Origin: Macrostomum lignano
Lineage: Eukaryota
Assembly: GCA_002269645.1 (NCBI GenBank)
Contig: NIVC01001056.1
Coordinates: 1 to 50,881, forward strand
DNA length: 50,881 nucleotides
Reading direction: 5' to 3'
The translations under genes were made by a program, and so were the position numbers. Shown piece by piece: positions 14,901-45,721 of the stretch (positions within the stretch are counted from its first letter, which is position 1; the number at the start of each line of letters is the position of its first letter). The notes under the pieces were generated by a model that was not told the DNA's origin, did not search any database, and worked only from the letters and a program-made list of their open reading frames with translations.

Positions 14901-16842
14901 CTGGGCTACGGCCCCCTCGCAGTCTATTCTAGGATGCATGTGCATTTTGTGTTACACATGCGGATAGCTTTACACAGGTTGTATAGCGGCCAAGGCGCAA
15001 TCAATCCCAGGTCTGAATGTACCTTGGCACCATAATAGAGATGCATTAGCAAGTTTACCCCTGTAGATCCTGTAAATTGTCTTGCTTCGCGAATGATTAA
15101 AAAGTCATAATAAAAAAACTTTCGATTGGCATTTTAATTTTATCGAATAGACTTAGTCTGTCCTCCTGGAATTGTGCACTTTGTCCTTCAGCCCCAATCC
15201 CCATGCCCGCTAATCCGCAGCCCTACTGCTCCGCCTGTCACAAGAAATTCTCCAGCGCTAAAGCTTTCGAAAATCACGTTGCTTCGAAGAAGCACAAGCA
15301 GCGCGAAGCCGAGCAGCTGGAGCAGCGCGAGACGCCTGGCCGCTCCGACTCGCCCGATTGGCTCAGCGTTGACGGCGACTCTGACTCAGACTCGGGCGAA
15401 CTCGATGGCGAGTCTCCACTCGGCCAGGAGGAGTGCCTGTTCTGCCCGAATGTGGCCGCCAGCCTGGAGGCCAACTGCGCGCACATGCTGCGCGAGCACG
15501 GGTTCGCTCTCCCCGACCCGGACCTGCTGTCCGACCTGGAGGGCCTCATCACTCTGCTAGATTATAAAGTTGGCGTCGGGCGCGAGTGCCTCTGGTGCCA
15601 CGGGGCCAGACGATTTGACAGCGTGCGAGCGGTGCGCAGCCACATGCTGGACAAGGGCCACTGTCGGTATAACCTGGCCGGGAGCACGCCTTTGATCTTG
15701 CCGACTTCTACGACTATAGCAGTCTGGGGGTGAGCAGCATCAGGGTTGGGATTGAGTGCGGATTGGGATCATTAGATGGGATCAGATTAGATGAGATCGG
15801 GTTAGATGGGTTCGGGTTAAATGGGATCAGATGAGATGGGATCAGATTAGATGGGATCGGGTTAGATGGGTTCGGTTTAGATGGGATCAGATGAGATAGG
15901 ATCAGATTAGATGGGATCGGGTTAGATGGGATCAGATTAGATGGGATCGGGTTAGATGGGATCGGGTTAGATGGGATCGGGTTAGATGGGATCGGGTTGG
16001 ATGGGATCAGATTAGATGGGTTCGGGTTAGATGGGTTCGGTTTAGATGGGATCAGATGAGATGGGATCAGATTAGATGGGATCGGGTTAGATGGGTTTGG
16101 GTTAGATGATATCAGATTGGATGGGATCAGATGAGATGGGATCAGATTAGATGGGATCAGATTAGATGGGATCAGATTAGATGGGATAAGGTTAGATGGG
16201 ATCGGGTTAGATGGGATCAGATTTGATGGGAAAAAGATCAGATTAGATGGGATCAGATTTGATGGGAAAAAGATCAGATTAGATGGGATCAGATTGGATG
16301 GATCCGATTAGATGGGATAGGATTAGATAGGATAGAATGAAATGGGATCAAATTAGATTTGATCAGACTGGATGACATCAGTTTAGATGCGATGGGATCT
16401 TATTAGTATTGCATAATCTCGGGCAGAATTTTCAAGCAGAATTCCTCTGCTTGCCGATCGGATCCCCCAGCTCGATCCCAACGCCGGCGAAGACGACGCC
16501 GACTCAGGCGAAGAAGACGCGCCAACCGATCTGGAGACATTCGAGCTGGTGCTGCCGTCCGGCGCCGTTGTCGGGCACCGCTCTCTGATGCGCTACTACA
16601 GGCAGAGCCCGGCCCCCTCCCGGGCGGTGGCCCTGCCTGCGGCCGGCGGCAGCCTGCAGCATCAGCGCCTGCTGGCTCAGTACAGATCCATTGGCTGGCA
16701 CGGCCCGACCCGCGGCCAGGCCGAGGTGGCCACCCTGCGCGATCGGGCCTTCGTGCAGCGGCATCGGCAGCGGGCGGCTGTGCAGCTCGGCTTGGGCGCC
16801 AATCGGCTGCAGAAACACTTCAGGGATCAGAATCCCAAGTAG
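11925..16842 (+). CDS. ZNF622: zinc finger protein 622 / Rei1-like cytoplasmic pre-60S maturation factor; exons 11925-12152, 15221-15729, 16471-16842
   Basis: Exon 1 MSFPCISC..HYKSEWHRYNLKRKV. Exon 2 YCSACHKKFSSAKAFENHVASKKH..CLFC..HMLREHGF..CLWC..HMLDKGHC. Exon 3 ELVLPSGAVVGHRSLMRYYRQ..KHFRDQ. All junctions are GT-AG, phase 0. One missing base in a G run near 15682 restores GEHAFDLADFYDY. Confidence 0.95.
13652..14180. mobile_element. MITE-like foldback element in ZNF622 intron 1 (about 80-bp inverted termini)
   Basis: 13652-13731 matches the reverse complement of 14100-14180 with about 10 mismatches. Internal gggatcgtat..aaagtg motifs occur in both orientations. Confidence 0.65.
14850..14915 (-). 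mobile_element. tRNA-derived SINE head
   Basis: Minus strand reads GGGGCCGTAGCCCAGCGGTAGCGCAGC..CCCAGGCTCAATTCC, with A-box and degenerate B-box. Confidence 0.5.
15745..16400. repeat. 15-bp minisatellite (gatgggatcagatta)n filling ZNF622 intron 2
   Basis: Tandem units visible directly. Confidence 0.95.
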
Positions 16843-17112: not shown

Positions 17113-19057
17113 GAGTGTCAGCCCATTTGTCCCATTGAGTTCATCTCCCTGTTCGCCCTGCAAGCCAGTCATAACTGATGTCGCTATCCAGTGTCAATAT
17201 AAACTGTACTGTTTGTTGATCAGCTCCCTCCCAAATGGTTGATAAATAAAACATTGCACCGCACTGTTTTCGGTGATGCTAAGAAATCTTCGCACTGTTT
17301 TGTTTTAAATTTCTGTTTGCAGCAGAGTCCCATCGCACCGAGCGAAGTGCAGCCATCCAAGTAATTAGTTTCTGCAGCTTTTAGATTAGCATGCATACAA
17401 GGTGACTAGGGGGATTCGGAATGCCTTAAGGAAATGGGATCTCTCTCTCCAGACAGCCTGGTTTATGAGGACCCGACGGTAGGGGGGAAGAGAGGTGACA
17501 GGCTTATTTCCGCCCAGCCTTCTCGTTTCCACTTCTTTCGGTTGCTATTGGCAACTTGAAAAAGATTGGGTGATTATAGAAACGGAGCGAACTGGCACTT
17601 TAATTACTGAGGCCTGCCTTGCCTGCTGTCCCAGTTCCCGGTCCGGGTCGTCTTGACAAATCATAAAACACCCGCCTTCTTCTTCTGTCTCCCCCCTCGA
17701 GTCAGTCTTTATGCACCTGCACGTCACGCCACCTACCCTCCTCCCCTCTCTCGATTATAAAACTGTGGCTTGCATGAGCTCTCGAAGTATTCGTTTTTGA
17801 TAATAAAAAAATCCGTAAAAAATTCTTTTGATTTTGTTTGTCAATAAGAAGCAGTAGAAGTTTTCATGTTGCTATCTCGAATGCGGTAAGTTGGAACAGT
17901 AAGTTTGCTAATTATATACTCGTACTTTCCTAGTATAAAGACAAACAACAAGGCCTTTTTTAATGACAAGCCCCAACCAACACTGAATTCGCGGTACCCA
18001 CCCAGTGCCCGAGTCTGGTAGAGAATGAATTGAAAAAGAGTTTGACCAGGGACCTCTGAATACACTTGGACTGTGAATACACTTGGACTGGTACCCAAAA
18101 GTTGTAGCAGAGTTTCGCTTCTTGTGTTATAATTACTTGTACATGTATGCCATAATTTTTCATATTTTTCATATAGAGCGCGAGAGCTCTGGGAGGGAGA
18201 GGCATCACAAAACCCGAAAAATCACAACTATGAAAAGCGCTTTCCCCCACCATAAAACCAAAATATCATAACTCCAAATGTTTTAGCAATGTCCAATGCT
18301 ATTTTGGTTTTTCTAGTTATTATTTCTGCACGAATTCAAACAGTCCATGTGCATCCAGAGGTCCCTGAGCTGGCGCAGCGAGCAGATCGTGAGAAGCAAA
18401 TTGCAGGAGAAGAGATTGCGAAGAGCTGACAATGAAAGAGTGCAAACGGAGCAACGCCCCTACCGTGCACAGCTTATAAATTAGACATGCAAAACCCATC
18501 ATACAAACTGCTTCTCTGTTAAATTATTTCATCTCGAGCTATTCTTCAGCGTGAGTTAACAACAATTTATTAGTTACCTTCACTTGTTATTTTGTAATGC
18601 GAGACTTCTCATGTGCAACAGTTTGTGCTTAGCTTGGAGTGTCAAAAATAGAGTTAAAAAACAGATTTGATTTCAACTTAGATTAGATAAACTGTTCAAT
18701 GTTATAAATTTCGCTTTGTAACTGGAATTCCTGTGACAACACTAAATTTGATTGAGGAAGCTTGTTTGTCACGTGTCAGTTGATTCTGTTGACCGTGTTT
18801 TTGCACCGCTTATCTGTTCTGTAGGAATGTGTACTGTATGTGTGTGTGTGTGTGTAGCACAGGCATGCGCTTGTATTGTGCTTTGCGTGAGTCAGACATT
18901 TTTATGTGAAACTTTCTATGTAAAAATTAACTGAAGATTAGCTACCAACACTGCCGTGCCGCTGCTCTTTAAGAAACCTCTTTATTACATGAAAGACTTT
19001 GCAATGTCTTTTGCACTGCTAGGCCGCCGCCTTTACCACACATCCTTAGTTCCTGCG

Positions 19058-19443
19058 CCAGCCTCTCAGATCCTCAGTTGTTAAGTTATCCTCCCAGATC
19101 CTCAATTGCCAAGCCGTTGTCCCAGATCCTCAGTTGCTGGGCCAGCCTCCCAGATCCTCAGTTGCTGGGCCAGCCTCCCAGATCCTCAGTTGCTGGGCCA
19201 GCCTCCCAGATCCTCAGTTGCTGTGCCAGCCTCCCAGATCCTCAGTTGCTGGGCCAGCCTCCCAGATCCTCAGTTGCTGTGCCAGCCTCCCAGATCCTCA
19301 GTTGCTGGGCCAGCCTCCCAGATCCTCAGTTGCTGGGCCAGCCTCCCAGATCCTCAGTTGCTGGGCCAGCCTCCCAGATCCTCAGTTGCTGGGCCAGCCT
19401 CCCAGATCCTCAGTTGCTGTGCCAGCCTCACAGATCCCCAGTT
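19058..19443 (+). repeat. 28-bp minisatellite (ctcccagatcctcagttgctgggccagc)n, about 13 copies, just upstream of ALAS
   Basis: Tandem units; same unit as the 42415-45505 array in opposite orientation. Confidence 0.95.
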
Positions 19444-19564
19444 GCCATCCCCACCTTACACACATCTCGGGCTCATATTGGTCAGGCCTAGCTCAGCATT
19501 GGGGATATTTAATCCAAGCATTTTCCCACAAATCGCAGTCCCGCCCGCCCGCAGCCCGGCAGCC

Positions 19565-22500
19565 ATGCTGTCCTGCCCGTTTCTCAGCCACCTGCCGAGC
19601 GGCCTCATCCAGTCCCGGCCCTGGTCTCTGCTGCGCTTCGCCCAGCGCTGCCCCGTGATCGGCAAGCACATCCAGCGGGCCATGACAGCCGGCGTTGAGG
19701 AATCTACGCAGTCGCAGCGTCATCAGCAACCGCCGCCGCCTCCGCCAATGTCTGAGAAGAAGTGCCCGTTTCTCAGCGGCCGCCTAGCTGCTAGCGACGC
19801 CGCCGTCTGCGGCCTGTCGCCGCCCAGCGAGTGTCCGTACAGCCGCATGGCCGGCCGGCCGCTGACCGTCTGCTGTATGGACGAGCAACAGGCGGCTCCA
19901 ATGCCAGCCGAGCCGCTGGTGCCGCAGGCTGAGCCCCCCAACCTCTACAACTACAAGGCCCGCTGCGAGGCCCAGCTGCAGCGGAAACGCGACGATCACA
20001 GCTATCGGGTGTTTCGCAAAGTAAACAGGCGCGGCCCGAGTTTCCCCCTGGCCGAGGAGCACACGGGCGGCAGGAAGGACATCACGGTGTGGTGCAGCAA
20101 TGACTATCTGGGCATGAGCTGGCATCCCGTGGTGCAGGTATTGGCAATTTCTGCTTCTAGTAGGGATTGTTGTCTAGTTAGTCTTATCGTACGAGTACAA
20201 TAAATGTATGAAAGTAGATCCTGAGGTGTGATGGGGGTAGAAGGGTGAGATGTTAGAGGCTGAGAGAAACGGGGGAGAAATAGGCTGAGAGATACGGGGG
20301 AGAAGTAGGCTGAGAGAATCGGGGGAGAAGTAGGCTGAGAGAAACGGGGGAGAAGTAGGCTGAGAGAAACGGGGGAAAAGTAGGCTGAGAGAAACGGGGG
20401 AGAAGTAGGCTGAGAGAAACGGGGGAGAAGTAGGCTGAGAGAATCGGGGGAGAAGTAGGCTGAGAGAATCGGGGGAGAAGTAGGCTGAGAGAAACGGGGG
20501 AGAAGTAGGCTGAGAGAAACGGGGGAGAAGTAGGCTGAGAGAATCGGGGGAAAAGTAGGCTGAGAGAAACGGGGGAGAAGTAGGCTGAGAGAAACGGGGG
20601 AGAAGTAGGCTGAGCACAGAAGATCAGCGGTGCTGATCGGTGACCGCCCACAGGAGGCGGTGATCGAGGCGGCCAGGCAGCACGGTGTGGGCTCGGGCGG
20701 CACCCGCAACATATCGGGCAACACCATCCATCACGAGGCGCTGGAGGCCGAGCTGGCCGACTGGCACGGCAAGGAGGCCGCCCTGCTGTTCACCTCGTGC
20801 TACGTGGCCAACGAGGCGACTCTGTACACCCTTGGCCAGCTGGTGCCCGGCCTGGTGTTTCTGTCCGATGCCGGTAATCACGCGAGCATGATTCACGGCA
20901 TCCGCACTAGCAACTGTCGCAAGGTGAGCTGCTGCACTAACGAGTCAGTTTTAACCAAGCGTTCACGATGTTAAAACTGACTGTTCACAATGTTTCACTG
21001 CCAAAAATTCACATTTGTAAATATGCGTTCACAGTGTTGTAACCGAGGATTCACAGTTGTAACCGAGCGTTCACACTATTGCTACATAAGGATTCACAGT
21101 TGTAACTAAGCGTTCACACTATTGCTACATAAGGATTCACAGTTGTAACTAAGCGTTCACACTATTGCTACATAAGGATTCACAGTTGTAACTAAGCGTT
21201 CACACTATTGCTACATAAGGATTCACAGTTGTAACTAAGCGTTCACAGTATTGCTACATAAGGATTCACAGTTGTAACTAAGCGTTCACACTATTGCTAC
21301 ATAAGGATTCACAGTTGTAACTAAGCGTTCACACTATTGCTACATAAGGATTCACAGTTGTAACTAAGCGTTCACAGTATTGCTACATAAGGATTCACAG
21401 TTGTAACTAAGCGTTCACACTATTGCTACATAGGGATTCACAGTTGTAACTAAGCGTTCACAGTATTGCTACATAAGGATTCACAGTTGTAACTACAGGG
21501 TGTCGACGGCCTCCTTTATATCCTTTATCTCCTTTATTATAGTTGTATTTTGTACAGTTTTGTACATTTGTGTACTTTTTGTACATTTATTACTCTCAAC
21601 TGATATAATGTGCTGCATCAAAATAGTAGCAATAAATTTTTATTAACTGTCTAGCACGCCTGCAGCTACCTGTAGACCACCTGGTGCAGGTTGGTATGGA
21701 TGGCCCAAGTGTCAATTTGAAGATTTTTTGCGATTTAAAGACAAAGCTACAGTCTGAGACTGAAGATCTCACTGGTTCGGTTGTTCTTGACACTGGTACC
21801 TGTGGATTGCAAACAGCAAGCCGATCATCCCATTGCAGCCATGATGCCAGTGGTTGGCATCTTCAGCAGTTTCTTCGCAACCTGTATTATTTGTTTAAAG
21901 ACTGTCCAGCTCGAGTAACAGAATTTCAAGCAGTGACACTGCTACAATCTACGCCCAATCAAGTTCTGTACTGTCCGCTGGCCAGAGAATTCCAAAGCAG
22001 CCAACCGAGCACTGGAAATGCTTTCTAGCTTACGCCAGTGGCTGGCTGCAAAGAGACCTGATGATTCAGAGTCCCTCATGTCACAGCTTCGATCTGCTTG
22101 TGCTGACAAGTACTTAGAGGCCAAGCTTCATTTTTTGTCTCTATCGCCAACCTACTTGAGCCATTTTTGCGACAGTTCCAAGCTGCTGCACCAATGTTTC
22201 CATTTTTGTACGAATCTCTAGGAGAAGTGCTTCGCAGTGTCATGCTACGATTTGTGGATGCCGACGTGATGAAGAAGTGCCTCACAGTGACCCAGCTCTT
22301 AGACCTTGACTTAAGCCAACAAGGCGTGCCAGAAAACTACTGTGGACTTTGGTTCAGCTGCTCAGGCTGCTATTGAACAACTCAAGCGACAAGCAACACC
22401 ACCAACTCAACATGAGCACTTGGCTTTTCGCACCACTAGTCGCAAGTTTCTTTTGAAAATGTATGAAAAGTTGTTTGAGAAGTCCCCTTTGGCACAGCCT

Positions 22501-25500
22501 ATTGCCAGGGCAGCAAGTTCTCTATCACCGCACCTTCTTCAGGAGGACACCAGTTTGTGTGACAAGAGGTTCAAGTTGCTAATGAAGCTGCTTTCTGACT
22601 CTGGTTGGTTGACACATGAGGATGCTGATAAAGCGAAGCAGCAGTTTTTTATCATGTAAAGTGATCCTCAGTGCTGTGTAGCTCTCTGCAGAATTTTGAC
22701 AGGCATACTGATCGACTTGATGTGTTCTTTTCTAACCTCTTTTTCTCAGCAGAAAGTGCTGAACAATTGCAAGGAGCTTCTTTGGATTGTTTGTTGTTCT
22801 AATATTGTCACATAAGCAGGCATCAGTTGAAAGTGGCTTCTCTATTAACAATAGTCTGCTGGTGGAAAACTTATCTGACCGAAGCCTAATTGCACAGATA
22901 ATTGTTTCCAAGCTATTCATGATGCCGGATCAGTCACAGCAATTGCCATCACTCCCAGAATGCTGCAGCATGTACGATCTGCCCGTTCAAGGTGCCTGGA
23001 AGCTCGAGAGCTGCAGCATAAACTGGACTCCGATAATGAACAGAAGGCTAAAAATAAAAAGTGGCAGCAAGAGATGGTTGAGAAACTTGAGAAAGAAGTG
23101 GCAGCTAAGCGTCATACGGCAGATGCAGCAACAAAGGATGCCGATGAGCTTGAAAAGAAGCTTGATGAGTTGAACAACGCTGGCCTCTAGTATTGACATT
23201 TTACATCTAGAGACAGCTAATTCCATTCAGGGGACAGTCTAGTTTTTATATTTTGCCTGCATGAAGTAAGTGTAAAAAGTGTTTTTTTTCTGTTTTGAAT
23301 GTAAACGTTTTCCCAACTCCCAGTTCTATTAATATTACATATTTAGTTTCACATGTGTGCAAGCATTTTATGATGAAGAAGTGTGCGTATATCAGTGGTA
23401 ACACTGATTTCATTTATTTTTAACACAATCATCTACTTTCTTAACATCAGGTATTTCTCCAGTAGGTAATCAATGATGATAAATAGATCTGAATAATAAT
23501 AGACAAAAATGTTGCTCGCGCAACTCTGAATGTACAACAGCAACTTGTGTAACAAGAATGCATAAAAAAGTCTCGTTTTTTAATTTTAATGTTGTAGTTT
23601 TTTTTGCTTAAGTCTTGTTACTAAGATAAAGTCCCCCTCCTCTAGCTGTACCCTGACCCTTGCAAAAAATCTCCTTTATTTGGGAGACAAAAAATGCGTC
23701 GACACCCTGTAACTAAGCGTTCACAATATTGCTACATAAGGATTCACAGTTGTAACTAAGCGTTCACAGTATTGCTACATAAGGATTCACAGTTGTAACT
23801 AAGCGTTCACAGTATTGCTACATAAGGATTCACAGTTGTAACTAAGCGTTCACAATATTGCTACATAAGGATTCACAGTTGTAACTAAGCGTTCACAGTA
23901 TTGCTACATAAGGATTCACAGTTGTAACTAAGCGTTCACAGTATTGCTACATAAGGATTCACAGTTGTAACTAAGCGTTCACAGTTTTGCTACATAAGGA
24001 TTCACAGTTGTAACTAAGCGTTCACACTATTGCTACATAAGGATTCACAGTTGTAACTAAGCGTTCACACTATTGCTACATAAGGATTCACAGTTGTAAC
24101 CAAGCGTTAACAGTTGTCGTAACCCGGGTCGGTTTGGGTGCCCAGTCCCGAGTACAATATGTATTACACGCAATATACAGGCGTAGTGACGCTCTGTCTG
24201 TACTTTTATGGATACGAGCAGGCGTGACGACGCTCTGCGATAATAGGTCGATCCCTCTGGTGTTGTGACACTCAGAGTTCACGCTGCAGCTCGAGGTGTG
24301 GTGACACTCTCGAGTGCTTCTAGTTTCCATACTGTAAGGTTGTACACACTATATAAAGTAACCGGTACAGTACTACAATAATACACAATATACTACGCTG
24401 CTGTGCTGCAGTGGTCACAGTCGCAGGCGTGATGACGCTCTAGCTATGGAACCACTGCTACGGCAAGGCCTCGGAAAAGCTAAAGAAGCGAATAAACTCT
24501 GGGTCTTACCGATGACAGAAGCTGTGAGGCTCGTTCGAATATCGCAACCACCTGACCGCTTTATTTGCTCGCAATTAATTGAGTCTTCGCAGTAAGAGAC
24601 CGTCTATACGGCTCGCTTGAGTATCGCTAGTTTAGTTTGAAGAACTAGGCGCGGGCGCGGAGCGGGGGAAGGTGCTGGGCCAGGCTTGAGCACTATATAC
24701 CACTTAAACAGGGTAGAGGGACAGACAGCGAGAGAGAAACGCCAAACAAAAGAAATGACCTCTCAGCCAATCAGCGTGCCCGCCGAGCAGATCTGACTGA
24801 ATGGGGGCTAGAGCGAAAAACACAAACTCTCAGGCCCAGCCAATCAGTGGCCGCCGCGGGGAAAGACTCAAGCCGGGCCGGGCGACCCCCAACCAGCCAG
24901 AACAGGCCAGACACCACACAGTATTGCTACTAATGGTTCACAGTTCCAACCAAGCATTCACAACCTCCATCCCCAATCCTGCAGATAATTTTCCCGCACA
25001 ACAATGTCGCCCGCCTTCGCCAAGAGCTGCTGAAGCTGCCGCTGGATTCGCCCAAGCTGGTGGCCTTCGAGACCGTCCACTCCATGACAGGCGACATCAG
25101 CCCCCTGGCCGAGCTGTGCAGCCTGACTCGCCAATTCGGCGGCCTCAGCTACGTCGACGAGGTGCACGCGGTCGGCATGTACGGCGCCGCCGGTGCCGGG
25201 GTCGGCGAGCGCGACGGCTGCCTGGCCGGCATGGACCTGATCAGCGGCACCCTCGGCAAGGCTATCGGCAACATCGGCGGCTACGTTGCCGGGGACGCCA
25301 CTGTGATTGACGCGGTCAGGAGCTACGCCAGCGGCTTCATCTTCACCACCAGCCTGCCGCCGACTGTGCTGGCCGGTGCTCGGGCCTCCCTTGCCGTGCT
25401 TCGCTCCGTCGAAGGCGCCGAGCTTCGCCAACGCCACCAGGCCGCTGTACAGCTCCTGCGCGAAGCCCTGCTGAGCCGCGGCCTGCCTGTGATCCCCGCG

Positions 25501-25803
25501 CCGAGCCACATCATCCCGCTGCACGTTGGCGATCCCCGGGTTGCTCAGGCCATCTCCGAGCACATGATGCACCGCTGCGGAGCCTACATCCAGGCTATCA
25601 ATTATCCAACCGTTGCTAGGGGCGACGAGCGGCTCCGGTTGGCGCCGACGCCGCACCACACGGAGCCGATGATCGTCCGCCTGGCGGATCAGCTGGCTGA
25701 CGCTTTCCGCCTTATCGGGCCGCACCTGCTGCGCTCCGACGGTCTGGAATCGGCGGCCGCTGATCCACCGCCCAGCCTGCAGCAGCTTGTGGTAGCCGCT
25801 TGA
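19565..25803 (+). CDS. ALAS: 5-aminolevulinate synthase, mitochondrial (553 aa); exons 19565-20137, 20654-20923, 24985-25803
   Basis: [80 protein letters not shown] (PLP lysine), [26 protein letters not shown]. All junctions are GT-AG phase 0 and the frame is continuous. N-terminal CP heme-regulatory motifs are present. Confidence 0.97.
20257..20612. repeat. 25-bp minisatellite (taggctgagagaaacgggggagaag)n in ALAS intron 1
   Basis: About 14 tandem units. Confidence 0.95.
21496..23709 (+). mobile_element. internally deleted hAT-like DNA transposon, 2214 bp, 13-bp TIRs, 6-bp TSD
   Basis: TIR CAGGGTGTCGACG / CGTCGACACCCTG. TAACTA is duplicated at 21490-21495 and 23710-23715. The interior encodes broken transposase motifs. 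Confidence 0.92.
21684..23190 (+). pseudogene. degenerate hAT-like transposase (5' part missing, multiple frameshifts/stops)
   Basis: Fragments [15 protein letters not shown] (CxxH position, H lost), [22 protein letters not shown] (RW motif, other frame), [12 protein letters not shown] and [17 protein letters not shown] (catalytic E region) across ORFs 21684-23190. Confidence 0.8.
24115..24918 (-). mobile_element. solo LTR (804 bp, TG...CA, 4-bp TSD), probably Gypsy-type, antisense to ALAS
   Basis: cagt|TGTCGTAAC...CACCACA|cagt, and removing it restores the 43-bp satellite unit. On the minus strand two CCAAT boxes (about 24840 and 24767) precede TATATA (about 24697), followed by AATAAA (about 24562). 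Confidence 0.75.
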
Positions 25804-31629: not shown

Positions 31630-32170
31630 TAAGGGACTCGGGAACGGAGGGACTCGGAAACGGAGGGTCTCGGGAACGGAGGGACTCGGGAACGGAGGGA
31701 CTCAGAAACGGAGGGTCTCGGGAACGGAGGGACTCGGAATCGGAGGGTCTCGGGAACGGAGGGACTCGGGAACGGAGCGATTCGGGAACGAAGGGACGCG
31801 GGAACGGAGGGTCTCGGGAACGGAGGGACTCGGGAACGGAGGGACTCGGAATCGGAGGGTCTCGGGAACGGAGGGACTCGGGAACGGAGGGACTCGGGAA
31901 CGGAGGTCTCGGGAACGGAGGGACTTGGGAACGGAGGGACTCGGGAACGGAGGGACTCGGAATCGGAGGGTCTCGGGAACGGAGCGACTCGGGAACGGAG
32001 CGACTCGGGAACGGAGCGACTCGGGAACGGAGCGACTCGGGAACGGAGCGACTCGGGAACGGAGGGACCGGAGGGACTCGGGAACGGAGAGACTCGCAAA
32101 CGGAGGGACTCGGGAACGGAGGGACTCGGGAACGGAGGGACTCAGAAACGGAGGGACTCGGGAGCAGAGG
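31630..32170. repeat. 16/17-bp minisatellite (gggactcgggaacgga)n
   Basis: Tandem units; source of ORFs 31589-32476 and their antisense ORFs. Confidence 0.92.
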
Positions 32171-32644
32171 GACTTAGTGACTGAGGAACGCAGATACGGA
32201 TGGGGACTTAAATGGCATCCATTCACGTCATACCGGTCCATTAAAGTGACGAAAATGCTATCAATAGCCGAATTCAACATCTCAGATCCTGGTAGATTTC
32301 AGAATCCAAATTTGTCCAACTTTGGCCCACGCACCTCTCATGCAGCTGCCGCGGCCAATCAACTGACTGCTTTGCGGATGAGGCCGCACTGCTGCATCAG
32401 GTTAATCCCGGGAGCCAGGGAAGAGGGGCAGGGCGGTGAAGAGGCGCAGAATGAGAAAGATGAGATACCCTCGTAGAGAGAACCCAAAACTTCTCGTTGC
32501 ATTCCAGGCGCATAAATACTAGCGCTTGGGCAGCTCCTCGCCACTGGAGTGCGAACGCCAGCTGGGCATTTGAGTAACCCAAGCCATCGCAGTACAGTTG
32601 CAAATCCTGCTAAACGTTTCGAGCACGGAGAGACAACGACGGAT

Positions 32645-33682
32645 ATGACGAAACTGCTGCTACTGCTCTCGGCTGCTCTGATGGCGGTCAACTTGCTGAG
32701 TCATTCAGCCAGTGCCAAGGGTGAGAGCGTGTCTCCTTAATTTACTCGTATTACCAAATTTGGGGTCAGACTCGAAAAATGGTTTGAGTACTAATATAAT
32801 CCGCACATTTCAGACCTGCTGGACACTGATGAGCTCGATAAGGCCGACATAAACGGTGATGCATCTCTTTGGCAAGACAAAAAGCGGGCCGGAGCCTGGA
32901 GCAGCGGATTCGGTAAACGTGCCGGAGCCTGGAGCAGCGGATTCGGTAAACGTGCCGGAGCCTGGAACAGCGGATTCGGTAAACGTGCCGGAGCTTGGAA
33001 CAGCGGATTCGGTAAACGTGCCGGAGCCTGGAGCAGCGGATTCGGTAAACGTGCCGGAGCCTGGAACAGCGGATTCGGTAAACGTGCCGGAGCCTGGAAC
33101 AACGGATTCGGTAAACGTGCTGGAGCCTGGAACAGCGGATTCGGTAAACGTGCTGGAGCCTGGAACAGCGGATTCGGTAAACGTGCCGGAGCCTGGAGCA
33201 GCGGATTCGGTAAACGTGCCGGAGCTTGGAACAGCGGATTCGGTAAACGTGCCGGAGCCTGGAGCAGCGGATTCGGTAAACGTGCCGGAGCCTGGAACAG
33301 CGGATTCGGTAAACGTGCTGGAGCCTGGAACAGCGGATTCGGTAAACGTGCTGGAGCCTGGAACAGCGGATTCGGTAAACGTGCTGGAGCCTGGAACAGC
33401 GGATTCGGTAAACGTGCTGGAGCCTGGAACAGCGGATTCGGTAAACGTGCCGGAGCTTGGAGCAGCGGATTCGGTAAACGTGCCGGAGCTTGGAGCAGCG
33501 GATTCGGTAAACGTGCCGGAGCTTGGAGCAGCGGATTCGGTAAACGTGCCGGAGCTTGGAGCAGCGGATTCGGTAAACGTTCCGGAGCTTGGAGCAGCGG
33601 ATTCGGTAAACGACTTAGCGAGGCCAGTCAAGACATCCCGGAAGTAGCGGCCAACACCGAGTTCTACCTTGACCTTGAGTAG
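32645..33682 (+). CDS. neuropeptide precursor (314 aa), 22 x [A/S]GAW[S/N][S/N]GF-amide; exons 32645-32720 and 32814-33682
   Basis: Exon 1 is the signal peptide MTKLLLLLSAALMAVNLLSHSASAK. The phase-1 GT-AG intron is 32721-32813. Exon 2 has an acidic pro-region DLLDTDELDKADINGDASLWQDKKR, 22 in-frame 33-nt units (32888-33613) each ending G-K-R, an acidic tail LSEASQDIPEVAANTEFYLDLE and TAG at 33680-33682. Confidence 0.95.
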
Positions 33683-34479
33683 ATACAATACGATTCCGAC
33701 AATGAGACACAAACTTTTAACTGCTACATTTACCAATATGCGTCTCTTAGGAACGCTTGAACCTGCTCCGGAATCTCCCAGAATGCGCCACAGAAACTGA
33801 GCCTCGAACCTTGAACACAGTGTACCTCTTTTCCCAAACATCCTTAGCGAAGAGCTGGCGCTGTGTCCATAGGCATCAGTGGATGAACAGAAATATACAA
33901 AATTTAGTCGTAATGCATGCATGGCTTGCAAATCATAACCCACGAGTACAGCTGTGTTGGGTTGGTTTCCATGGCAAAATAACGCCGGTCTCGTTCACTG
34001 AAATACCCTCATTAGCTGAGCCCGACAACAACTGCCATTTTAAGCCCAAAAAGCGGCTCAGTGGGTAAGCAGAATGACAATAAGGAGGAATTACTAAAGT
34101 ATCGCAGGTGCAAGTTTTCTCACGGGCCAAAGTAACTGATGCCATGCTGTAGACATTGACGCCGTATTGTGTTGTTAGTTGTTAGAGATTGGGTAGGAAG
34201 TTTTGAGCACATCTCAGGTGTGCCACTCAGCCTGCAAGCATTTGCAGACCCGAAAGGCTTGCGGTAAATCTCTGGCTCTATGCAGCTATTTCGGTACCCA
34301 AGAGGCACCAGTTATGGACAAGCTGATTCCCAATTCACCGCACGGTCTATGCTGTGATGCTGACTGCAATAAATCAGCCTCTGGCTTACTTCTAAACTAG
34401 ACCAAGTCTGAGACAATAAAGAAAGTTTAAATTCTCTCATTGTTAGCTGTACGGAGTACGGATAACTTCAGAGTAGCGG

Positions 34480-34850
34480 TGGGGGGGGCTGAGTAGCGGC
34501 GTGGGGCTGAGAAGCGGTGTGGGGCTGAGTAGCGGTGTGGGGCTGAGTAGCGGTGTGGGGCTGAGTAGCGGTGTGTGGCTGAGTAGCGGTGTGGGGCTGA
34601 GTAGCGGTGTGAGGCTGAGAAGCGGTGGGGGCTGAGTAGCGGTGGGGGCTGAGTAGCGGTGTGGGGCTGAGAAGCGGTGTGTGGCTGAGTAGCGGTGTGT
34701 GGCTGAGAAGCGGTGGGGGCTGAGAAGCGGTGTGGGGCTGAGTAGCGGTGTGTGGCTGAGTAGCGGTGTGTGGCTGAGAAGCGGTGTGGGGCTGAGTAGC
34801 GGTGTGGGGCTGAGTAGCGGTGTGTGGCTGAGAAGCAGTGTGGGGCGAGT
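34480..34850. repeat. 18-bp minisatellite (gagtagcggtgtggggct)n
   Basis: Tandem units. Confidence 0.92.
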
Positions 34851-38564: not shown

Positions 38565-41500
38565 TCAAATATAGTGCGGAGTCTCCTGCCCAGTGAGCAG
38601 TCTGAACACTGAGGTCGGCATGGTTTTCATGTGGATCTCCCCCACTCCGGAGGCCAGCATGGAGACAATCTTGTCGTGCGGGGTGGCCACCACGGACTGG
38701 CCGTTGATCTCGATGATCCGGTGGCCGACTCGGACTCCGCCGCGTTCGGCGATGCCGCCACGGAGCAGCGAGCAGATGACGCCGTTTTGCACACTGAAGC
38801 CCAATTGGTACTTGGCGTCTGGCCGGCGGATTAGCACCTGCAGCAGTTCGGGATCTTGGCTGGACTAGCAATCCATCTAGGCTAGCAATCCATCTAGGCT
38901 AGCAATCCATCTAGGCTAGCAATCCATCTAGGCTAGCAATCCATCTAGGCTAGCAATCCATCTAGGCTAGCAATCCATCTAGGCTAGCAATCCATCTAGG
39001 CTAGCAATCCATCTAGGCTAGCAATCCATCTAGGCTAGCAATCCATCTAGTCCAGCAATCCATCTAGACTAGCAATCCATCTAGTCTAGCAATCCATCTA
39101 GGCTAGCAATCCATCTAGGCTAGCAATCCATCTAGGCTAGCAATCCATCTAGGCTAGCAATCCATCTAGGCTAGCAATCCATCTAGGCTAGCAATCCATC
39201 TAGGCTAGCAATCCATCTAGGCTAGCAATCCATCTAGGCTAGCAATCCATCTAGGCTAGCAATCCATCTAGGCTAGCAATCCATCTAGGCTAGCAATCCA
39301 TCTAGGCTAGCAATCCATCTAGGCTAGCAATCCATCTAGGCTAGCAATCCATCTAGGCTAGCAATCCATCTAGGCTAGCAATCCATCTAGGCTAGCAATC
39401 CATCTAGGCTAGCAATCCATCTAGGCTAGCAATCCATCTAGGCTAGCAATCCATCTAGTCTAGACTAGCAATCCATCTAGGCTAGCAATCCATCTAGTCT
39501 AGACTAGCAATGCATTTAGTGTGGACTAGCAATCCATCTAGGCTAGCAATCCATCTTGACTAGGCTAGCAATCCATCTTGACTAGGCTAGCAATCCATCT
39601 TGACTAGGCTAGCAATCCATCTTGACTAGGCTAGCAATCCATCCCAGGTAAACTAGAGTACCTGCACAACAGGCGGACAGGACACCAAGCTGAGCTTGAC
39701 TGCAGTCCTCGGTCGGCAGGCTTTGAGCAGCTGCTGGCAGGTGGACAGCGGCAGGCCCACCAGACTGACCCCGTTCACCGCCAGCAGCTGGTCGCCGATG
39801 TTAAGCTGGGCGCATCGGGCCGCTGGGCCGGCTGGCTGCATGTTGGCCAGCACGGCGGTGGGCAGCAGGGAGCCCCAGCCGCTTTCAACAACCACAACGC
39901 CCAACGGTTCGCCTTTGGCTTTGGGCACCAGCACCTCTTTCTGGGTCTCCGGCCGGCTGAACAGAGCCAGCTCCTCGCCTAGGAGGTCCTGCGCTTCCAG
40001 CACGTCCTGGTAGGCGGCCTCCCGCAGCTCTCGGCGATGCGGTCGGTCGACGCCGTTCGCGCGAAGAAACTCCAGATAGGCGGATTGGAAGGCCTGGCCG
40101 ATGGACTGGGCTACCAGGCCGGCCTGAGTGGGCGGGGCGGTGTGTGATATCAACTGATTTATTAATTGATAATGAGTGAGCCCCTCAAAGGGCCGTTTTT
40201 ATTTTCAGATAATTTGGGTGGACAGGGCAGGTGTGTGATATCAGTTGTCGATTTATTCATTGATAATGATTCTGTCCTTCAAAGGGCCGTTTTTCAGATA
40301 ATTTGGGTGGACAGGGCAGGTGCGTGATATCAAATGATTTATTTACTAAATATAGGTGAGGCCCTAAAAGGGCCGTTTTTATTATCTGGGCAGGTGTGTG
40401 TGAAATTAATTGACTTATTCATTGATTATAGTTGAGCCTCTAAAAGGGCCGTTTTTATTGATTTTGGATGGCGGGGCAGGTTAGTGTGAAATCAATTGAT
40501 TTATTGATTGATATAGCAAAAGGGCGCCCAAAAGAACCCATGTATGCGTGCTTTGAATGCTTTCACTACAGAGAAGGTATAGTTCACTGGGCCTCATTAG
40601 CAAGTCGTCCAGACTCCATCATCCTCGAGACTATTCGGGGACTGTTTGCTGTGTGAGGTTATAATTTTAGCAAAAATGAGAATAGCGAAATAATTCGAAA
40701 CTTTCAGCATGGACGAGTGGCGAAATCAATCAAGAACACACAGCTAGTTTCGACCTAGTAATAATAATATAATCATTGATTACACCTGCCCCAATCGGGC
40801 CTGATGTGCAACCGACATCGCATCTGAAGGCTGCGTACGGCTGTTCAGTCCAATGACTGAAGGGTCGCCACACACAGCCTCAATTACCCCAGCTAATGCT
40901 GGCACCCATTTTATAGCTCAAGCAATGTAGAGTAGTGTCTTGCTCAAGGACACAAATTGTTCCGAGAGTGGGTCGAACCGAATCGAACCCCCGACCTTCC
41001 AGCCATGAGTCCAATGCTCTAACCACTAGGCTACAACCACGGTCTCTTACTGAGAAGACTCAATTTGAACTGGAATATACAAGACACTGGAGACAAAGTG
41101 TCACGTGGGGGCAGAAAGTGAAGTTCACTTCCTGTTTAAGTGCAGTTGGAACTTTGGAACTTTTATAGTTCTCCCGTGATCAATTTGAACAGAAAATCTC
41201 GGATAAAGTTTCGATTTAAAAATAGAAAAAAACGAAGGGAGATAAACGAAAAAGGAGAGGCGAGAGAATAAAGGAGAAGAAAGGAGTGGAAAGATGAGGA
41301 GGGAGGAGAGAGGAGATAAGAGAGAGAAGAGAAGAGGAGATGGGGCGAGAGGAGAGGAGAGAGGAGAGAGGAGATGATAGAGAAGAGAGGAGAGGAGAGC
41401 GGAGAGGAGAGAGGAGAGGAGAAAGGAGAGAGGAGAGAGGAGAGAGGAGAGATGATAGAGAAGAGAGGAGAGAGGAGAGGAGAGAGGAGAGAGGAGAGAG

Positions 41501-44500
41501 GAGAGGAGAGGAGAGAGGAGAGGAGAGAGGAGAGAGGAGAGGAGAGGAGAGAGGAGAGAGGAGAGAGGAGAGGAGAGAGGAGAGAGGAGAGAGGAGATGA
41601 TAGAAAAGAGAAGAGAGGAGAGAGGAGAGGAGATGATAGAGAAGAGAGGAGAGAGGAGAGGAGAGAGGAGAGAGGAGAGAGGAGAGGAGAGGAGAGAGGA
41701 GAGGAGAGAGGAGAGAGGAGAGGAGAGGAGAGAGGAGAGAGGAGAGAGGAGAGGAGAGAGGAGAGAGGAGAGAGGAGATGATAGAAAAGAGAAGAGAGGA
41801 GAGAGGAGAGGAGATGATAGAGAAGATAGGAGAGGAGAGAGGAGGGCGAAGAGAAGAGAAGAGAGAAGAGAGGAAAGGGTAGAGAGGAGATTAGAGAGAA
41901 GAGCGCTGAGAAGAGATACAAACCTTGAGCAGGCCGGATTGCTATGGTGAAGTTTCAAAGGACCCGAGGGCCGGATGGAGAGGCACGCGGGCCGGAGTTT
42001 GCCGACCCCTGTACTATAAAAAGCTATTTTTATTCCAATAATTAGATAATAGTAAGCTTTATTTCCATGAATAAGAATGTCCGCGCACACACGCAGAGCT
42101 CAGGCAGTGCGCACTCACCTCGTCAGTCTCGAACACGTGGCAGACAACGCGGGCCTGCTTCTTCTCCGGACTGTGCAGGAGCCGCCTGCGGGCCATGAAC
42201 ACCAGCAGGTTGCCAATATCTGCGATGTAGGCCACGGTCTTCAGCGCGTGGTCCATCATGATCTCCTGCAGGTTGGCGTTCAGCACCAGGATCTTTTCCT
42301 TGGAGATGAACAGGTCGACTGGGACGCAGGGCTGCTGCTCTCCATCCGGCGCCTTGGCGGGCGGTGGACGGTTGAGGTCTTTGATTTAGGGAATCGCGGT
42401 ACTGGGAAAGCGGCGGTGGCCCAGCAACTGAGCATCTGGGAGGCTGGCCCAGCAACTGAGGATCTGGGAGGCTGGCCCAGCAACTGAGGATCTGGGAGGC
42501 TGGCCCAGCAACTGAGGATCTGGGAGGCTGGCCCAGCAACTGAGGATCTGGGAGGCTGGCCCAGCAACTGAGGATCTGGGAGGCTGGCCCAGCAACTGAG
42601 GATCTGGGAGGCTAACTTAACAACTGAGGATCTGGGAGGCTAACTTAACAACTGAGGATCTGGGAGACTGGCCCAGCAACTGAGGATCTGAGAGGCTGGC
42701 CCAGCAACTGAGGATCTGGGAGACTGGCCCAGCAACTGAGGATCTAAGAGGCTGGCTCAGCAACTGAGGATCTGGGAGACTGGCCCAGTAACTGGGTATC
42801 TGGAGAGGCCCAGAAACTGAGAATATGGGAGGCTGGCCCAGCAACTGAGGATCTGGGAGGCTGGCTCAGCAACTGAGGATCTGGGAGACTGGCCCAGTAA
42901 CTGGGTATCTGGAGAGGCCCAGAAACTGAGAATATGGGAGGCTGGCACAGCAACTGAGGATCTGGGAGGCTGGCCCAGCAACTGAGGATCTGGGAGGCTG
43001 GCCCAGTAACTGAGGATCTGGGAGGCTGGCCCAGCAACTGAGGATCTGGGAGGCTGGCCCAGCAACTAAGGATCTGGGAGGCTGGCCCAGCAACTGAGGA
43101 TCTGGGAGGCTGGCCCAGCAACTGAGGATCTGAGAGGCTGGCTTAGCAACTGAGGATCTGGGAGGCTGGCCCAGCAACTGAGGATCTGGGAGGCTGGCCC
43201 AGCAACTGAGGATCTGGGAGGCTAACTTAACAACTGAGGATCTGGGAGACTGGCCCAGCAACTGAGGATCTGAGAGGCTGGCTCAGCAACTGAGGATCTG
43301 GGAGACTGGCCCAGTAACTGAGGATCTGGGAGGCTGGCCCAGCAACTGAGGATCTGGGAGGCTGGCCCAGCAACTAAGGATCTGGGAGGCTGGCCCAGCA
43401 ACTGAGGATCTGGGAGGCTGGCACAGCAACTGAGGATCTGAGAGGCTGGCTCAGCAACTGAGGATCTGGGAGGCTGGCCCAGCAACTGAGGATCTGAGAG
43501 GCTGGCTCAGCAACTGAGGATCTGGGAGGCTGGCCCAGCAACTGAGGATCTGGGAGACTGGCCCAGCAACTGAGGATCTGAGAGGCTGGCTCAGCAACTG
43601 AGGATCTGGGAGACTGGCCCAGTAACTGGGTATCTGGAGAGGCCCAGAAACTGAGAATATGGGAGGCTGGCCCAGCAACTGAGGATCTGGGAGGCTGGCC
43701 CAGCAACTGAGGATCTGGGAGACTGGCCCAGTAACTGGGTATCTGGAGAGGCCCAGAAACTGAGAATATGGGAGGCTGGCACAGCAACTGAGGATCTGGG
43801 AGGCTGGCCCAGCAACTGAGGATCTGGGAGGCTGGCCCAGTAACTGAGGATCTGGGAGGCTGGCCCAGCAACTGAGAATATGGGAGGCTGGCCCAGCAAC
43901 TGAGGATCTGGGAGGCTGGCCCAGCAACTGAGGATCTGGGAGACTGGCCCAGTAACTGGGTATCTGGAGAGGCCCAGAAACTGAGAATATGGGAGGCTGG
44001 CACAGCAACTGAGGATCTGGGAGGCTGGCCCAGCAACTGAGGATCTGGGAGGCTGGCCCAGCAACTGAGGATCTGGGAGGCTGGCCCAGCAACTGAGGAT
44101 CTGGGAGGCTGGCCCAGCAACTGAGGATCTGAGAGGCTGGCTCAGCAACTGAGGATCTGGGAGGCTGGCCCAGCAACTGAGGATCTGTGAGGCTGGCCCA
44201 GCAACTGAGGATCTGGGAGGCTGGCCCAGTAACTGAGGATCTGGGAGGCTGGCCCAGCAACTGAGGATCTGGGAGGCTGGCCCAGCAACTGAGGATCTGG
44301 GAGGCTGGCCCAGCAACTGAGGATCTGGGAGGCTGGCCCAGAAACTGAGGATCTGGGAGGCTGGCCCAACAACTGAGGATCTGGGAGGCTGGCCCAGCAA
44401 CTGAGGATCTGGGAGGCTGGCCCAGCAACTGAGGATCTGGGAGGCTGGCCCAGCAACTGAGGATCTGAGAGGCTGGCTCAGCAACTGAGGATCTGGGAGG

Positions 44501-45721
44501 CTGGCCCAGCAACTGAGGATCTGTGAGGCTGGCCCAGCAACTGAGGATCTGGGAGGCTGGCCCAGCAACTGAGGATCTGGGAGGCTGGCCCAGCAACTGA
44601 GGATCTGGGAGGCTGGCCCAGCAACTGAGGATCTGGGAGACTGGCCCAGTAACTGGGTATCTGGAGAGGCCCAGAAACTGAGAATATGGGAGGCTGGCAC
44701 AGCAACTGAGGATCTGGGAGGCTGGCCCAGCAACTGAGGATCTGGGAGGCTGGCCCAGCAACTGAGGATCTGGGAGGCTGGCCCAGCAACTGAGGATCTG
44801 GGAGGCTGGCCCAGCAACTGAGGATCTGAGAGGCTGGCTCAGCAACTGAGGATCTGGGAGGCTGGCCCAGCAACTGAGGATCTGTGAGGCTGGCCCAGCA
44901 ACTGAGGATCTGGGAGGCTGGCCCAGTAACTGAGGATCTGGGAGGCTGGCCCAGCAACTGAGGATCTGGGAGGCTGGCCCAGCAACTGAGGATCTGGGAG
45001 GCTGGCCCAGCAACTGAGGATCTGGGAGGCTGGCCCAGAAACTGAGGATCTGGGAGGCTGGCCCAACAACTGAGGATCTGGGAGGCTGGCCCAGCAACTG
45101 AGGATCTGGGAGGCTGGCCCAGCAACTGAGGATCTGGGAGGCTGGCCCAGCAACTGAGGATCTGAGAGGCTGGCTCAGCAACTGAGGATCTGGGAGGCTG
45201 GCCCAGCAACTGAGGATCTGTGAGGCTGGCCCAGCAACTGAGGATCTGGGAGGCTGGCCCAGCAACTGAGGATCTGGGAGGCTGGCCCAGCAACTGAGGA
45301 TCTGGGAGGCTGGCCCAGCAACTGAGGATCTGGGAGGCTGGCCAGCAACTGAGGATCTGGGAGGCTGGCCCAGAAACTGAGGATCTGGGAGGCTGGCCCA
45401 ACAACTGAGGATCTGGGAGGCTGGCCCAGCAACTGAGGATCTGGGAGGCTGGCTCAGCAACTGAGGATCTGGGAGGCTGGCTCAGCAACTGAGGATCTGA
45501 GAGGGTGGCGTTGGCCCAGTAAGTGGAGATCTGGGAGGCTGGTGACTGAGACGTAAAGATGTAGCAGGATGCTCATCAGTGCTCCAGCTCGGACACCCAC
45601 CTTGACCCTGTTCACAGCCTCCTGCGCTTGCGTCATCCTGGCGGCTTTGCCGGGCTGGCCCTCGTGACCAGCTGGGTAGAGCCGAGGTACAGCGCCCTGA
45701 ACAGCAGGCCCTCGATCAGCA
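38565..45721 (-). CDS. APBA: X11/Mint/LIN-10 (amyloid-beta precursor protein-binding family A) PTB-PDZ-PDZ adaptor; exons 45601-45721, 42119-42352, 39662-40123, 38565-38837
   Basis: [31 protein letters not shown]; [53 protein letters not shown]; [65 protein letters not shown]; [45 protein letters not shown]. Junction phases are consistent. One missing base near 45665. Confidence 0.95.
38863..39643. repeat. 17-bp minisatellite (ctagcaatccatctagg)n, about 45 copies, filling the last APBA intron
   Basis: Near-perfect tandem units. Confidence 0.97.
40135..40510. repeat. degenerate about 100-120-bp tandem repeat (gggcaggtgtgtgatatc..aaagggccgttttt), about 4 copies
   Basis: Recurring gggcaggtg and aaagggccgttttt anchors. 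Confidence 0.7.
40759..41044 (-). mobile_element. full-length tRNA-derived SINE (tRNA-Met-like head, conserved central box, (ATT)n tail)
   Basis: Minus strand: TAGCCTAGTGGTTAGAGC (A box), CTCATGG loop (CAT), GGTTCGATTC (B box), then TGTGTCCTTGAGCAAGACACT..ATAAAATGGGT, and 3' GGCAGGTGTAATCAATGATTATATTATTATTA. Confidence 0.8.
41255..41925. repeat. polypurine (GAGAG/GGAGA)n microsatellite with internal duplication
   Basis: Almost pure A/G strand. Confidence 0.95.
42415..45505 (-). repeat. 28-bp minisatellite, about 110 copies, in APBA PTB-region intron; 697-bp higher-order duplication
   Basis: Unit cagcaactgaggatctgggaggctggcc. Identical variant strings occur at 44142-44456 and 44839-45153. 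Confidence 0.98.

Follow-up and report, generated by a model that had tools for sequence, protein, structure and literature searches.

A stretch of 50,881 nucleotides (nt) from the flatworm Macrostomum lignano (contig NIVC01001056.1, hereafter the window, whose coordinates are used throughout) carries, at positions 32645-33682 of the forward strand, a sequence that is best explained as a whole as a two-exon gene for a classical multi-copy prohormone, with a family that is plausibly the flatworm counterpart of the mollusc Wx3Yamides. We assign this reading a probability of roughly 0.78. The two exons, 32645-32720 and 32814-33682, when joined and translated, give an open product of 314 amino acids (aa). 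The gene, here called gene A, is GenBank locus BOX15_Mlig020154g1, which has so far been annotated solely as a 90-aa fragment. Judged by the comparisons below, it may well represent the orphan Wx3Yamide family for the first time outside the molluscs. It is otherwise a real, expressed gene of an ordinary kind, and it leaves the understanding of how prohormones work unchanged.

Gene model and transcript support

Coding exon 1 (32645-32720; like the rest of the gene, on the forward strand) encodes Met1 to Lys25 and the first base of the codon for Asp26. The encoded signal peptide, MTKLLLLLSAALMAVNLLSHSASA, begins with MTK, continues with a leucine-rich core and ends in SHSASA/K, with a predicted cleavage site after ASA24; its maximum nine-residue Kyte-Doolittle value is 2.84, and alanine occupies positions -3 and -1. 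An intron of 93 nt in phase 1 follows (32721-32813, GTGAGA...TTTCAG), with the donor AAG/GTGAGA and the acceptor TTTCAG/AC. Exon 2 opens with an acidic spacer, (K)DLLDTDELDKADINGDASLWQD, in which 8 of the 23 residues are Asp or Glu (32814-32878), and then encodes KKR, the first basic cleavage site (32879-32887). The 22 tandem units of 33 nt that come next (32888-33613) each encode an octapeptide plus Gly-Lys-Arg, and Tandem Repeats Finder (TRF) reported them as a single array at 32888-33612 with a period of 33, 22.0 copies, 97% matches, 0 indels and a score of 1275. All 22 units are KR-flanked octapeptides with glycine as the C-terminal amide donor, the KKR standing before the first. They comprise 9 copies of AGAWSSGF, 11 of AGAWNSGF, 1 of AGAWNNGF and 1 of SGAWSSGF, and the GCC/GCT variants at unit codons 1 and 3 are synonymous. 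An acidic C-terminal peptide, LSEASQDIPEVAANTEFYLDLE, and a TAG stop codon (33680-33682) complete the gene (33614-33682).

Much of this anatomy had been proposed in a sequence-only reading of the same DNA. Its 33-bp repeat, 22 units, counts of each unit and 314-aa product were reproduced exactly by TRF and translation, and its synonymous GCC/GCT differences were recovered at the two codons named above. Its interpretation of the product as a prohormone is borne out by the signal-peptide features (heuristically), the acidic spacer, the KKR, the 22 G-KR sites and the frame-specific selection described in the next section.

An exhaustive phmmer search against 1.84 billion proteins gave three short entries for the gene, which cluster look-up identified. 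One of these, UniProt A0A1I8HFI7 (M. lignano, "Secreted protein", 68 aa), matches the allele on contig C3614, one of the further copies of gene A. In its cluster are PAA72860.1 and PAA73061.1, 90-aa records from two contigs, named "hypothetical protein BOX15_Mlig020154g1, partial". PAA72860.1 equals residues 1-90 of the spliced model letter for letter, over the exon junction (...SASAK/DLLDT...), and removal of the same intron is reproduced by PAA73061.1 and A0A1I8HFI7. The genes in the GenBank annotation of Mlig_3_7 come from genome-guided assemblies of RNA-seq reads, with annotated repeats used as a filter (PMC5730564). Because PAA72860.1 is identical to the spliced model over these residues and the annotation is RNA-seq-derived, transcription and the intron, including the 32720/32814 junction first proposed from the DNA, are supported via existing annotation.

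The other two entries, also from UniProt, were considered as independent transcript evidence and set aside. A0A1I8FAM5, misnamed "RxLR effector protein", reads through the 5' untranslated region and departs from the window sequence, and A0A1I8JQD3 is frameshifted through the repeat. Both look like corrupted versions of gene A, predicted on another, error-prone assembly, which we take to be the older ML2.

The gene had been described as hidden; it is not wholly so, since truncated GenBank and UniProt models exist under the labels "hypothetical" and "secreted". The 314-aa model has no exact record in the protein databases, an absence that is itself weak evidence, and neither a full-length model nor a mature peptide of the gene was found in the databases and literature searched. 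The flatworm peptide catalogue of McVeigh et al. 2009 reportedly used M. lignano expressed sequence tags. That catalogue and the one of Koziol 2016 lay outside our literature search, which returned no relevant paper for the peptides (AGAWSSGF, WSSGF, WSSSF, SGFamide), the gene and protein identifiers or names of the Ml-npp style. A complete model is supplied here for a gene that public databases carry only as "hypothetical" or "secreted" fragments of 68-90 aa, one of them mislabelled "RxLR effector". The case shows how genes of this sort are obscured in the repeat-rich M. lignano genome by tandem-repeat filtering and by assembly from short reads.

Paralogous genes and conservation of the reading frame

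Gene A is not a singleton but one of three paralogous W-x3-F-amide genes with three copies each. A protein search of the M. lignano genome (764,410,778 bases in 5269 contigs) found eight loci beyond the window, and these were then modelled; the locus in the window is C1056 in the genome. The nine loci represent three genes, A, B and C. Gene A (C1056, C1039 and C3614) encodes AGAW[S/N]SGF in 22, 22 and 19 units, respectively. Gene B (C4190, C1733 and C2877) encodes AGQRWS[S/N]GF and PDQRWSSGF in 23, 15 and 12 units, and gene C (C1965, C2913 and C4389) encodes QQRWSSSF, QPQVWSSSF, QRQMWSSSF and RQRWSSSF in 6 units each. At all nine loci the signal peptide is encoded by an exon of 70-76 nt that ends in phase 1, and an intron of 76-159 nt is followed by an acidic spacer and by Gly-terminated units with KR on either side. 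Genes B and C have the intron at the same position and phase as gene A, with equivalent signal-peptide N-termini. Trp lies five residues from the amidated C-terminus (W-x3-aromatic-Gly-dibasic) in 22 of 22 window units and in all units of genes B and C, and each of the approximately 130 M. lignano peptide copies ends in Phe.

The three copies of gene A are very similar. The copy on the minus strand of C1039 (C1039:17722-18756) is identical over the exons, the intron and 600 nt downstream, with one difference in 600 nt upstream, and the flanks of the plus-strand copy on C3614 (C3614:22504-23439) are about 96% identical. Exon 1 is the same in both and matches residues 1-25 of PAA72860.1. Because C3614 has 19 mostly Asn-type units (18 of the 19, comprising 17 AGAWNSGF and 1 AGTWNSGF) as against 22 in the window, homeologs or haplotypes vary both in the number of repeats and in the proportion of Ser and Asn units; the coding difference from the window is one synonymous-position change in the region of the C-terminal acidic peptide. 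That each gene occurs in triplicate agrees with what is known of the DV1 line, namely its hidden polyploidy and the redundancy of its assembly (PMC5730564). In the C2877 copy of gene B (C2877:54486-55010), two units read WASGF and the last unit is AGQRWSSGF-VKR, so that the last peptide would lose its amide donor through the change of Gly to Val.

An open frame carries little information at this locus. The list of open reading frames (ORFs) that begin with a start codon includes 32856-33647 on the forward strand (the PEPGAADSVNV frame) and minus-strand frames, and exon 2 is missing from it because it contains no in-frame ATG, GTG or TTG. This reproduces the earlier observation that the ORF track was limited to wrong frames; a stop-to-stop list shows the exon-2 frame at 32795-33682. 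Since five of the six frames are open across the 33-bp array, openness alone is no evidence of coding.

Comparison of the paralogs is decisive. The consensus cores encoding WSS[G/S]FGKR differ at 5 (A/B), 9 (A/C) and 6 (B/C) of 24 nt, and the differences include Ser codons AGC versus TCC/TCG and Arg codons CGT, CGA, CGC and AGG. In frame +0, the protein identities for the same pairs are 8/8, 7/8 and 7/8, and in any other frame they are at most 5/7. Within the arrays, most variable core sites are third codon positions (24), with 6 second and 4 first positions. The spacers of A, B and C are mutually unalignable, and those of the B copies differ in amino acids. Because the cores are conserved as protein only in frame +0 despite 5-9 differences per 24 nt, these comparisons show that the peptide reading frame is under purifying selection. 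The ratio dN/dS among the three A copies was uninformative, the C1039 gene being identical and C3614 differing at one coding position outside the repeats.

A genome-wide search for the pattern W-x3-F-G-K-R gave 392 matches versus 134 in a control, with no new family member among the matches listed. Several loci were rejected as family members or kinin genes: C1066, C735, C1509, C3226, C2070, C870, C3178 and C9 are without G-[KR][KR] periodicity, and the frames at C199, C2402, C42, C1219, C1306, C3305 and C390 belong to minisatellites and lack dibasic sites. Translations of the minisatellites C1219:33752-34219, C1306:56517-56999, C199:48153-48497, C3305:34653-35129 and C390:536001-536432 (e.g., EPQFTSWTGE and GGRQAGRLSDV) reach E = 2e-42 against neuropeptide-precursor queries, and translated minisatellites are a source of false positives when the M. 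lignano genome is mined for repetitive prohormones. The three-gene W-x3-F-amide family is defined here in a genetically tractable flatworm, and exact predicted peptide masses can be used in peptidomics. The computed [M+H]+ values are 781.363 for AGAWSSGF-NH2, 808.374 for AGAWNSGF-NH2, 835.385 for AGAWNNGF-NH2 and 797.358 for SGAWSSGF-NH2 in gene A, 994.485 for AGQRWSSGF-NH2 in gene B, and 1007.469 for pQQRWSSSF-NH2 and 1047.489 for pQPQVWSSSF-NH2 in gene C.

Proposed relation to the mollusc Wx3Yamides

The nearest likeness of the family is to mollusc Wx3Yamide, which the sequence-only reading had not considered, having named allatotropin instead. The best phmmer match among the 1.84 billion proteins was a precursor built of APAWQAVYGKR units (E = 6.5e-61). 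Among the best 80 matches, about 15 carry tandem W-x3-Y-G-KR units, and all the named ones are molluscs (Dreissena, Mya, Potamilus, Haliotis and Batillaria). Precursors from Littorina, Crassostrea, Pinctada, Solemya, Candidula and Elysia came up in addition when a profile was used as the query. When a Haliotis precursor was searched reciprocally against the M. lignano genome, the A and C loci were the only genuine matches. The name Wx3Yamide goes back to Stewart et al. 2014 (PMC4200219), and scallop members of the family are SNKWSIAYamide, LRQGWNIAYamide and QQGWHIAYamide (Zhang et al. 2018, PMC5996578); APGWGATYamide (Dreissena KAH3891038.1) and QQGWHSDYamide (Haliotis rubra XP_046558594.1) are further examples. 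A 2021 oyster paper still described the family as "molluscan" and without known function. The peptides are orphan on both sides, the literature searched assigning no function and containing no receptor report that we found.

The two groups share multi-copy octa- or nonapeptides that are KR-flanked, with Gly as amide donor, Trp at position -5 and an aromatic amide at position -1. They also share a gene plan of two coding exons and one phase-1 intron right after the signal peptide, as found in the Haliotis rubra and Crassostrea angulata genes. A QQ-x-W start is shared by gene C only (QQRWSSSF, compared with QQGWHIAY). They differ in the C-terminal residue, which is Tyr in nearly all mollusc copies and Phe in M. 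lignano, and in the x3 residues, which are H, I, A or T in molluscs and Ser/Asn/Gly-rich in M. lignano. The residues before Trp, characteristically QQG (probable pyroGlu) or APG in Wx3Yamides, are AGA in the window gene, AGQR in gene B and QQR or QPQV in gene C. Mollusc precursors contain 3-20 varied units, whereas the window gene contains 22 near-identical ones, and the phylum is different. A minority of mollusc copies nevertheless end in Phe (QQGWHSGF, QQGWYGHF, QQGWHSHF and LQAWLTTF). Because every M. lignano copy ends in Phe, as do this minority of mollusc copies, the W-x3-F-amide family is placed here as a Phe variant and putative homolog of Wx3Yamide rather than as a strict or proven member, a placement to which these comparisons give about an even chance.

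Several points weigh against the view of gene A as a prohormone related to Wx3Yamide. The C-terminal Tyr-amide that defines the mollusc family is replaced by Phe in every M. lignano copy, and the link is drawn from an eight-residue motif (Trp at -5, aromatic amide at -1, QQ in gene C only). Common GKR periodicity inflates the E-values of one repetitive precursor against another, and hemipteran kinin precursors (APAFNSWGGKR) score nearly as high (E = 1.2e-53). A phase-1 intron after the signal peptide is common in secreted-protein genes. Owing to the repeat-inflated scores and this common intron pattern, the reciprocal matches and the gene structure are weak evidence. No other flatworm homolog was found by a search that, among flatworm genomes, covered M. 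lignano only. As for the gene itself, the signal-peptide call is a heuristic prediction from hydrophobicity and the -3/-1 rule, and the 22-copy mRNA is deduced from the open frame, because existing models end within the repeat at 68-90 aa and no full-length transcript was seen. Cleavage, amidation, neuronal expression and receptor action of the gene A peptides are likewise extrapolated from established prohormone biochemistry.

The alternative that survives best accepts a genuine amidated-peptide precursor and takes W-x3-F-amide to be a Macrostomum- or flatworm-specific invention, with its likeness to Wx3Yamide convergent between short peptides. We give it a sizeable minority chance. Searches of 1.84 billion and 5.8 billion proteins returned no non-mollusc relative, the likeness is confined to two aromatic positions and the processing sites, kinin precursors score almost equally, and the 2021 oyster paper still labels Wx3Yamide "molluscan". 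Flatworm prohormones of the npp/spp kind (Collins et al. 2010, PMC2953531), among them Smed-cpp-1, which encodes [V/T]PGWamide, resemble gene A in the kind of gene, the processing logic and the phylum. Dependence on PC2 is shown in planarians, and the M. lignano pc2 homolog is essential. The Schmidtea and Schistosoma prohormone lists searched contained no W-x3-[FY]-amide. In the Schmidtea prohormone supplement, QGW, GAW, QRW, AGW, SGW, GWS, GFGKR and SFGKR were absent, PGW occurred only in cpp-1, and RWS occurred only in Sma-npp-27, which is unrelated. Convergence is opposed by the common peptide length, Trp position and aromatic amide end, by the QQ-x-W start in gene C, and by the Phe-ending mollusc copies, the reciprocal best matches and the equal exon-intron plan.

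If the W-x3-F-amides are indeed the counterparts of Wx3Yamide, W-x3-[F/Y]-amide may be an ancient lophotrochozoan signalling system common to flatworms and molluscs rather than a mollusc innovation, a proposal that we make tentatively and rate at slightly below even. In that case the nine loci and approximately 130 peptide copies in M. lignano would suggest a major transmitter, and the orphan system would become directly testable in an animal with RNA interference (RNAi), stable transgenesis and a transparent body. The family called "molluscan" in 2021 would then be at least lophotrochozoan-wide and would gain an experimental model.

Predicted processing, remaining alternatives and genomic neighbourhood

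In the proposed mechanism, the signal peptide would be removed after Ala24, a PC2-type convertase would cleave after KKR and after every KR, a carboxypeptidase would trim the basic residues, and PHM/PAL would turn the exposed Gly into a C-terminal amide. The predicted output is 22 neutral octapeptides, AGAW[S/N]SGF-NH2 together with two minor variants, plus the acidic spacer and the acidic tail; the gene C peptides, which start with Gln, would probably be pyroglutamylated. As a repetitive prohormone, the precursor itself would be expected to be disordered. The peptides would most likely be released by peptidergic neurons or endocrine cells and would act on a receptor, probably a G protein-coupled receptor. 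For the pc2 homolog of M. lignano, nervous-system expression and lethality on RNAi knock-down are reported (PMC4490696). A PHM-like ORF lies at C73:272967-273356, and its best PDB matches are all peptidylglycine alpha-hydroxylating monooxygenase (PHM; E = 4e-17). The top Cu2_monooxygen match in the genome, C416, was rejected as PHM, being a membrane-anchored protein of about 670 aa. The Cu2_monooxygen domain (PF01082) has 44 matches in the genome, many of them in tandem clusters (including C861:376587-425561, C757:32378-66325 and C4862:6050-31939). The top type is an ORF of about 640-670 aa with a C-terminal hydrophobic stretch that is seemingly membrane-spanning, and is not PHM. The set suggests that copper monooxygenases have greatly expanded in this lineage.

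The precursor could instead be a non-neuronal secreted repetitive pro-protein, processed in a furin-like manner to a gland secretion, a pheromone or antimicrobial or defensive peptides, which we consider improbable. M. lignano does have many gland-specific repetitive secreted proteins, and with an unusually large Cu2_monooxygen family (the 44 matches) amidation may extend beyond neurons. Against this, short, identical peptides set off by G-KR at strictly regular intervals are the hallmark of neuropeptide and peptide-hormone precursors, and the nearest mollusc relatives came from ganglia, by peptide analysis or transcriptome (PMC4200219, PMC5996578 and the 2021 oyster paper). The peptides are also neutral and eight residues long, unlike antimicrobial peptides.

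Very unlikely is a degenerate kinin (leucokinin/lymnokinin) in which F-x-x-W-G-amide was rearranged to W-x-x-G-F-amide. Kinin precursors are likewise multi-copy and amidated, those of hemipterans are among the best matches, and the insect unit APAFNSWGGKR shares A-x-A-aromatic-N-S with AGAWNSGFGKR (7/11 identical). No F-x-x-W-G-GKR gene turned up in the M. lignano genome, which leaves a kinin gene otherwise unaccounted for. The order of the aromatic residue and Gly is permuted, however (W-[S/N]-[S/N]-G-F-amide as opposed to F-x-x-W-[G/S/A]-amide), so that both defining residues, Phe at -5 and Trp at -2, are displaced. Lophotrochozoan kinins retain F-x-x-W-[SAG]-amide, as the scallop peptides PNFHPWAamide and AFHAWGamide illustrate (PMC5996578), and a kinin query matches the A loci weakly (E ~1e-8).

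Other known families were rejected on direct inspection. With one Trp per peptide and a C-terminal Phe, the peptides do not match MIP/allatostatin-B (W-x6-8-W-amide), and the FMRFamide and myomodulin motifs do not fit either; the misfit to these and to kinin had been correctly anticipated. Allatotropin precursors contain a single peptide of 13-14 residues ending in -RGF-amide or -HGF-amide. The 22 octapeptide copies with a conserved Trp and an -SGF-amide end resemble allatotropin in the C-terminal Gly-Phe-amide only. A word-indexed homolog search returned only a weak allatostatin-A match for the full precursor and no match for gene C.

Finally, the reading as a non-coding minisatellite whose frames are open by chance and whose gene model is an artefact, which the tandem repeats covering about 28% of the window, the five open frames of six across the array and the strong spurious protein matches from minisatellite frames of this genome might suggest, has almost no likelihood left and is already refuted, as far as sequence evidence reaches, by the frame-specific conservation over three paralog families, the signal-peptide exon and phase-1 intron kept in 9 of 9 loci, and the RNA-seq-derived GenBank coding sequence with an identical splice.

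Candidate control elements around gene A were located by pattern scan. A TATA-like element, CATAAATA, at 32511-32518 on the forward strand, 127 nt upstream of the ATG, may be the core promoter, and two AATAAA hexamers (34368 and 34415, within 34368-34420 on the same strand), the first canonical poly(A) signals past the stop codon, may mark the 3' end; an 18-bp tandem array (34471-34850) lies downstream of the pair. A 16-bp tandem array, AGGGACTCGGGAACGG, of about 34 copies (31632-32174) ends approximately 470 nt upstream of the ATG and also precedes both other gene A copies.

The peptide gene lies between a 5-aminolevulinate synthase gene (19085-25800, plus strand; recognized by the domains Preseq_ALAS, 19085-20203, and Aminotran_1_2, 24934-25800) and a PDZ gene, the latter recognized by a domain match in a coding exon (39656-40198, minus strand). 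Coding exons for ankyrin repeats (5955-9154, minus strand, E = 6e-42) and a zf-C2H2_2 zinc-finger protein (15101-15730, plus strand, E = 2e-28) are also present in the window. The 28-bp unit TGGCCCAGCAACTGAGGATCTGGGAGGC is repeated 111 times at 42417-45509 and, in inverted orientation, 14 times at 19042-19445, 23 kb away, and a 43-bp unit forms two arrays, at 21007-21495 and 23708-24114.

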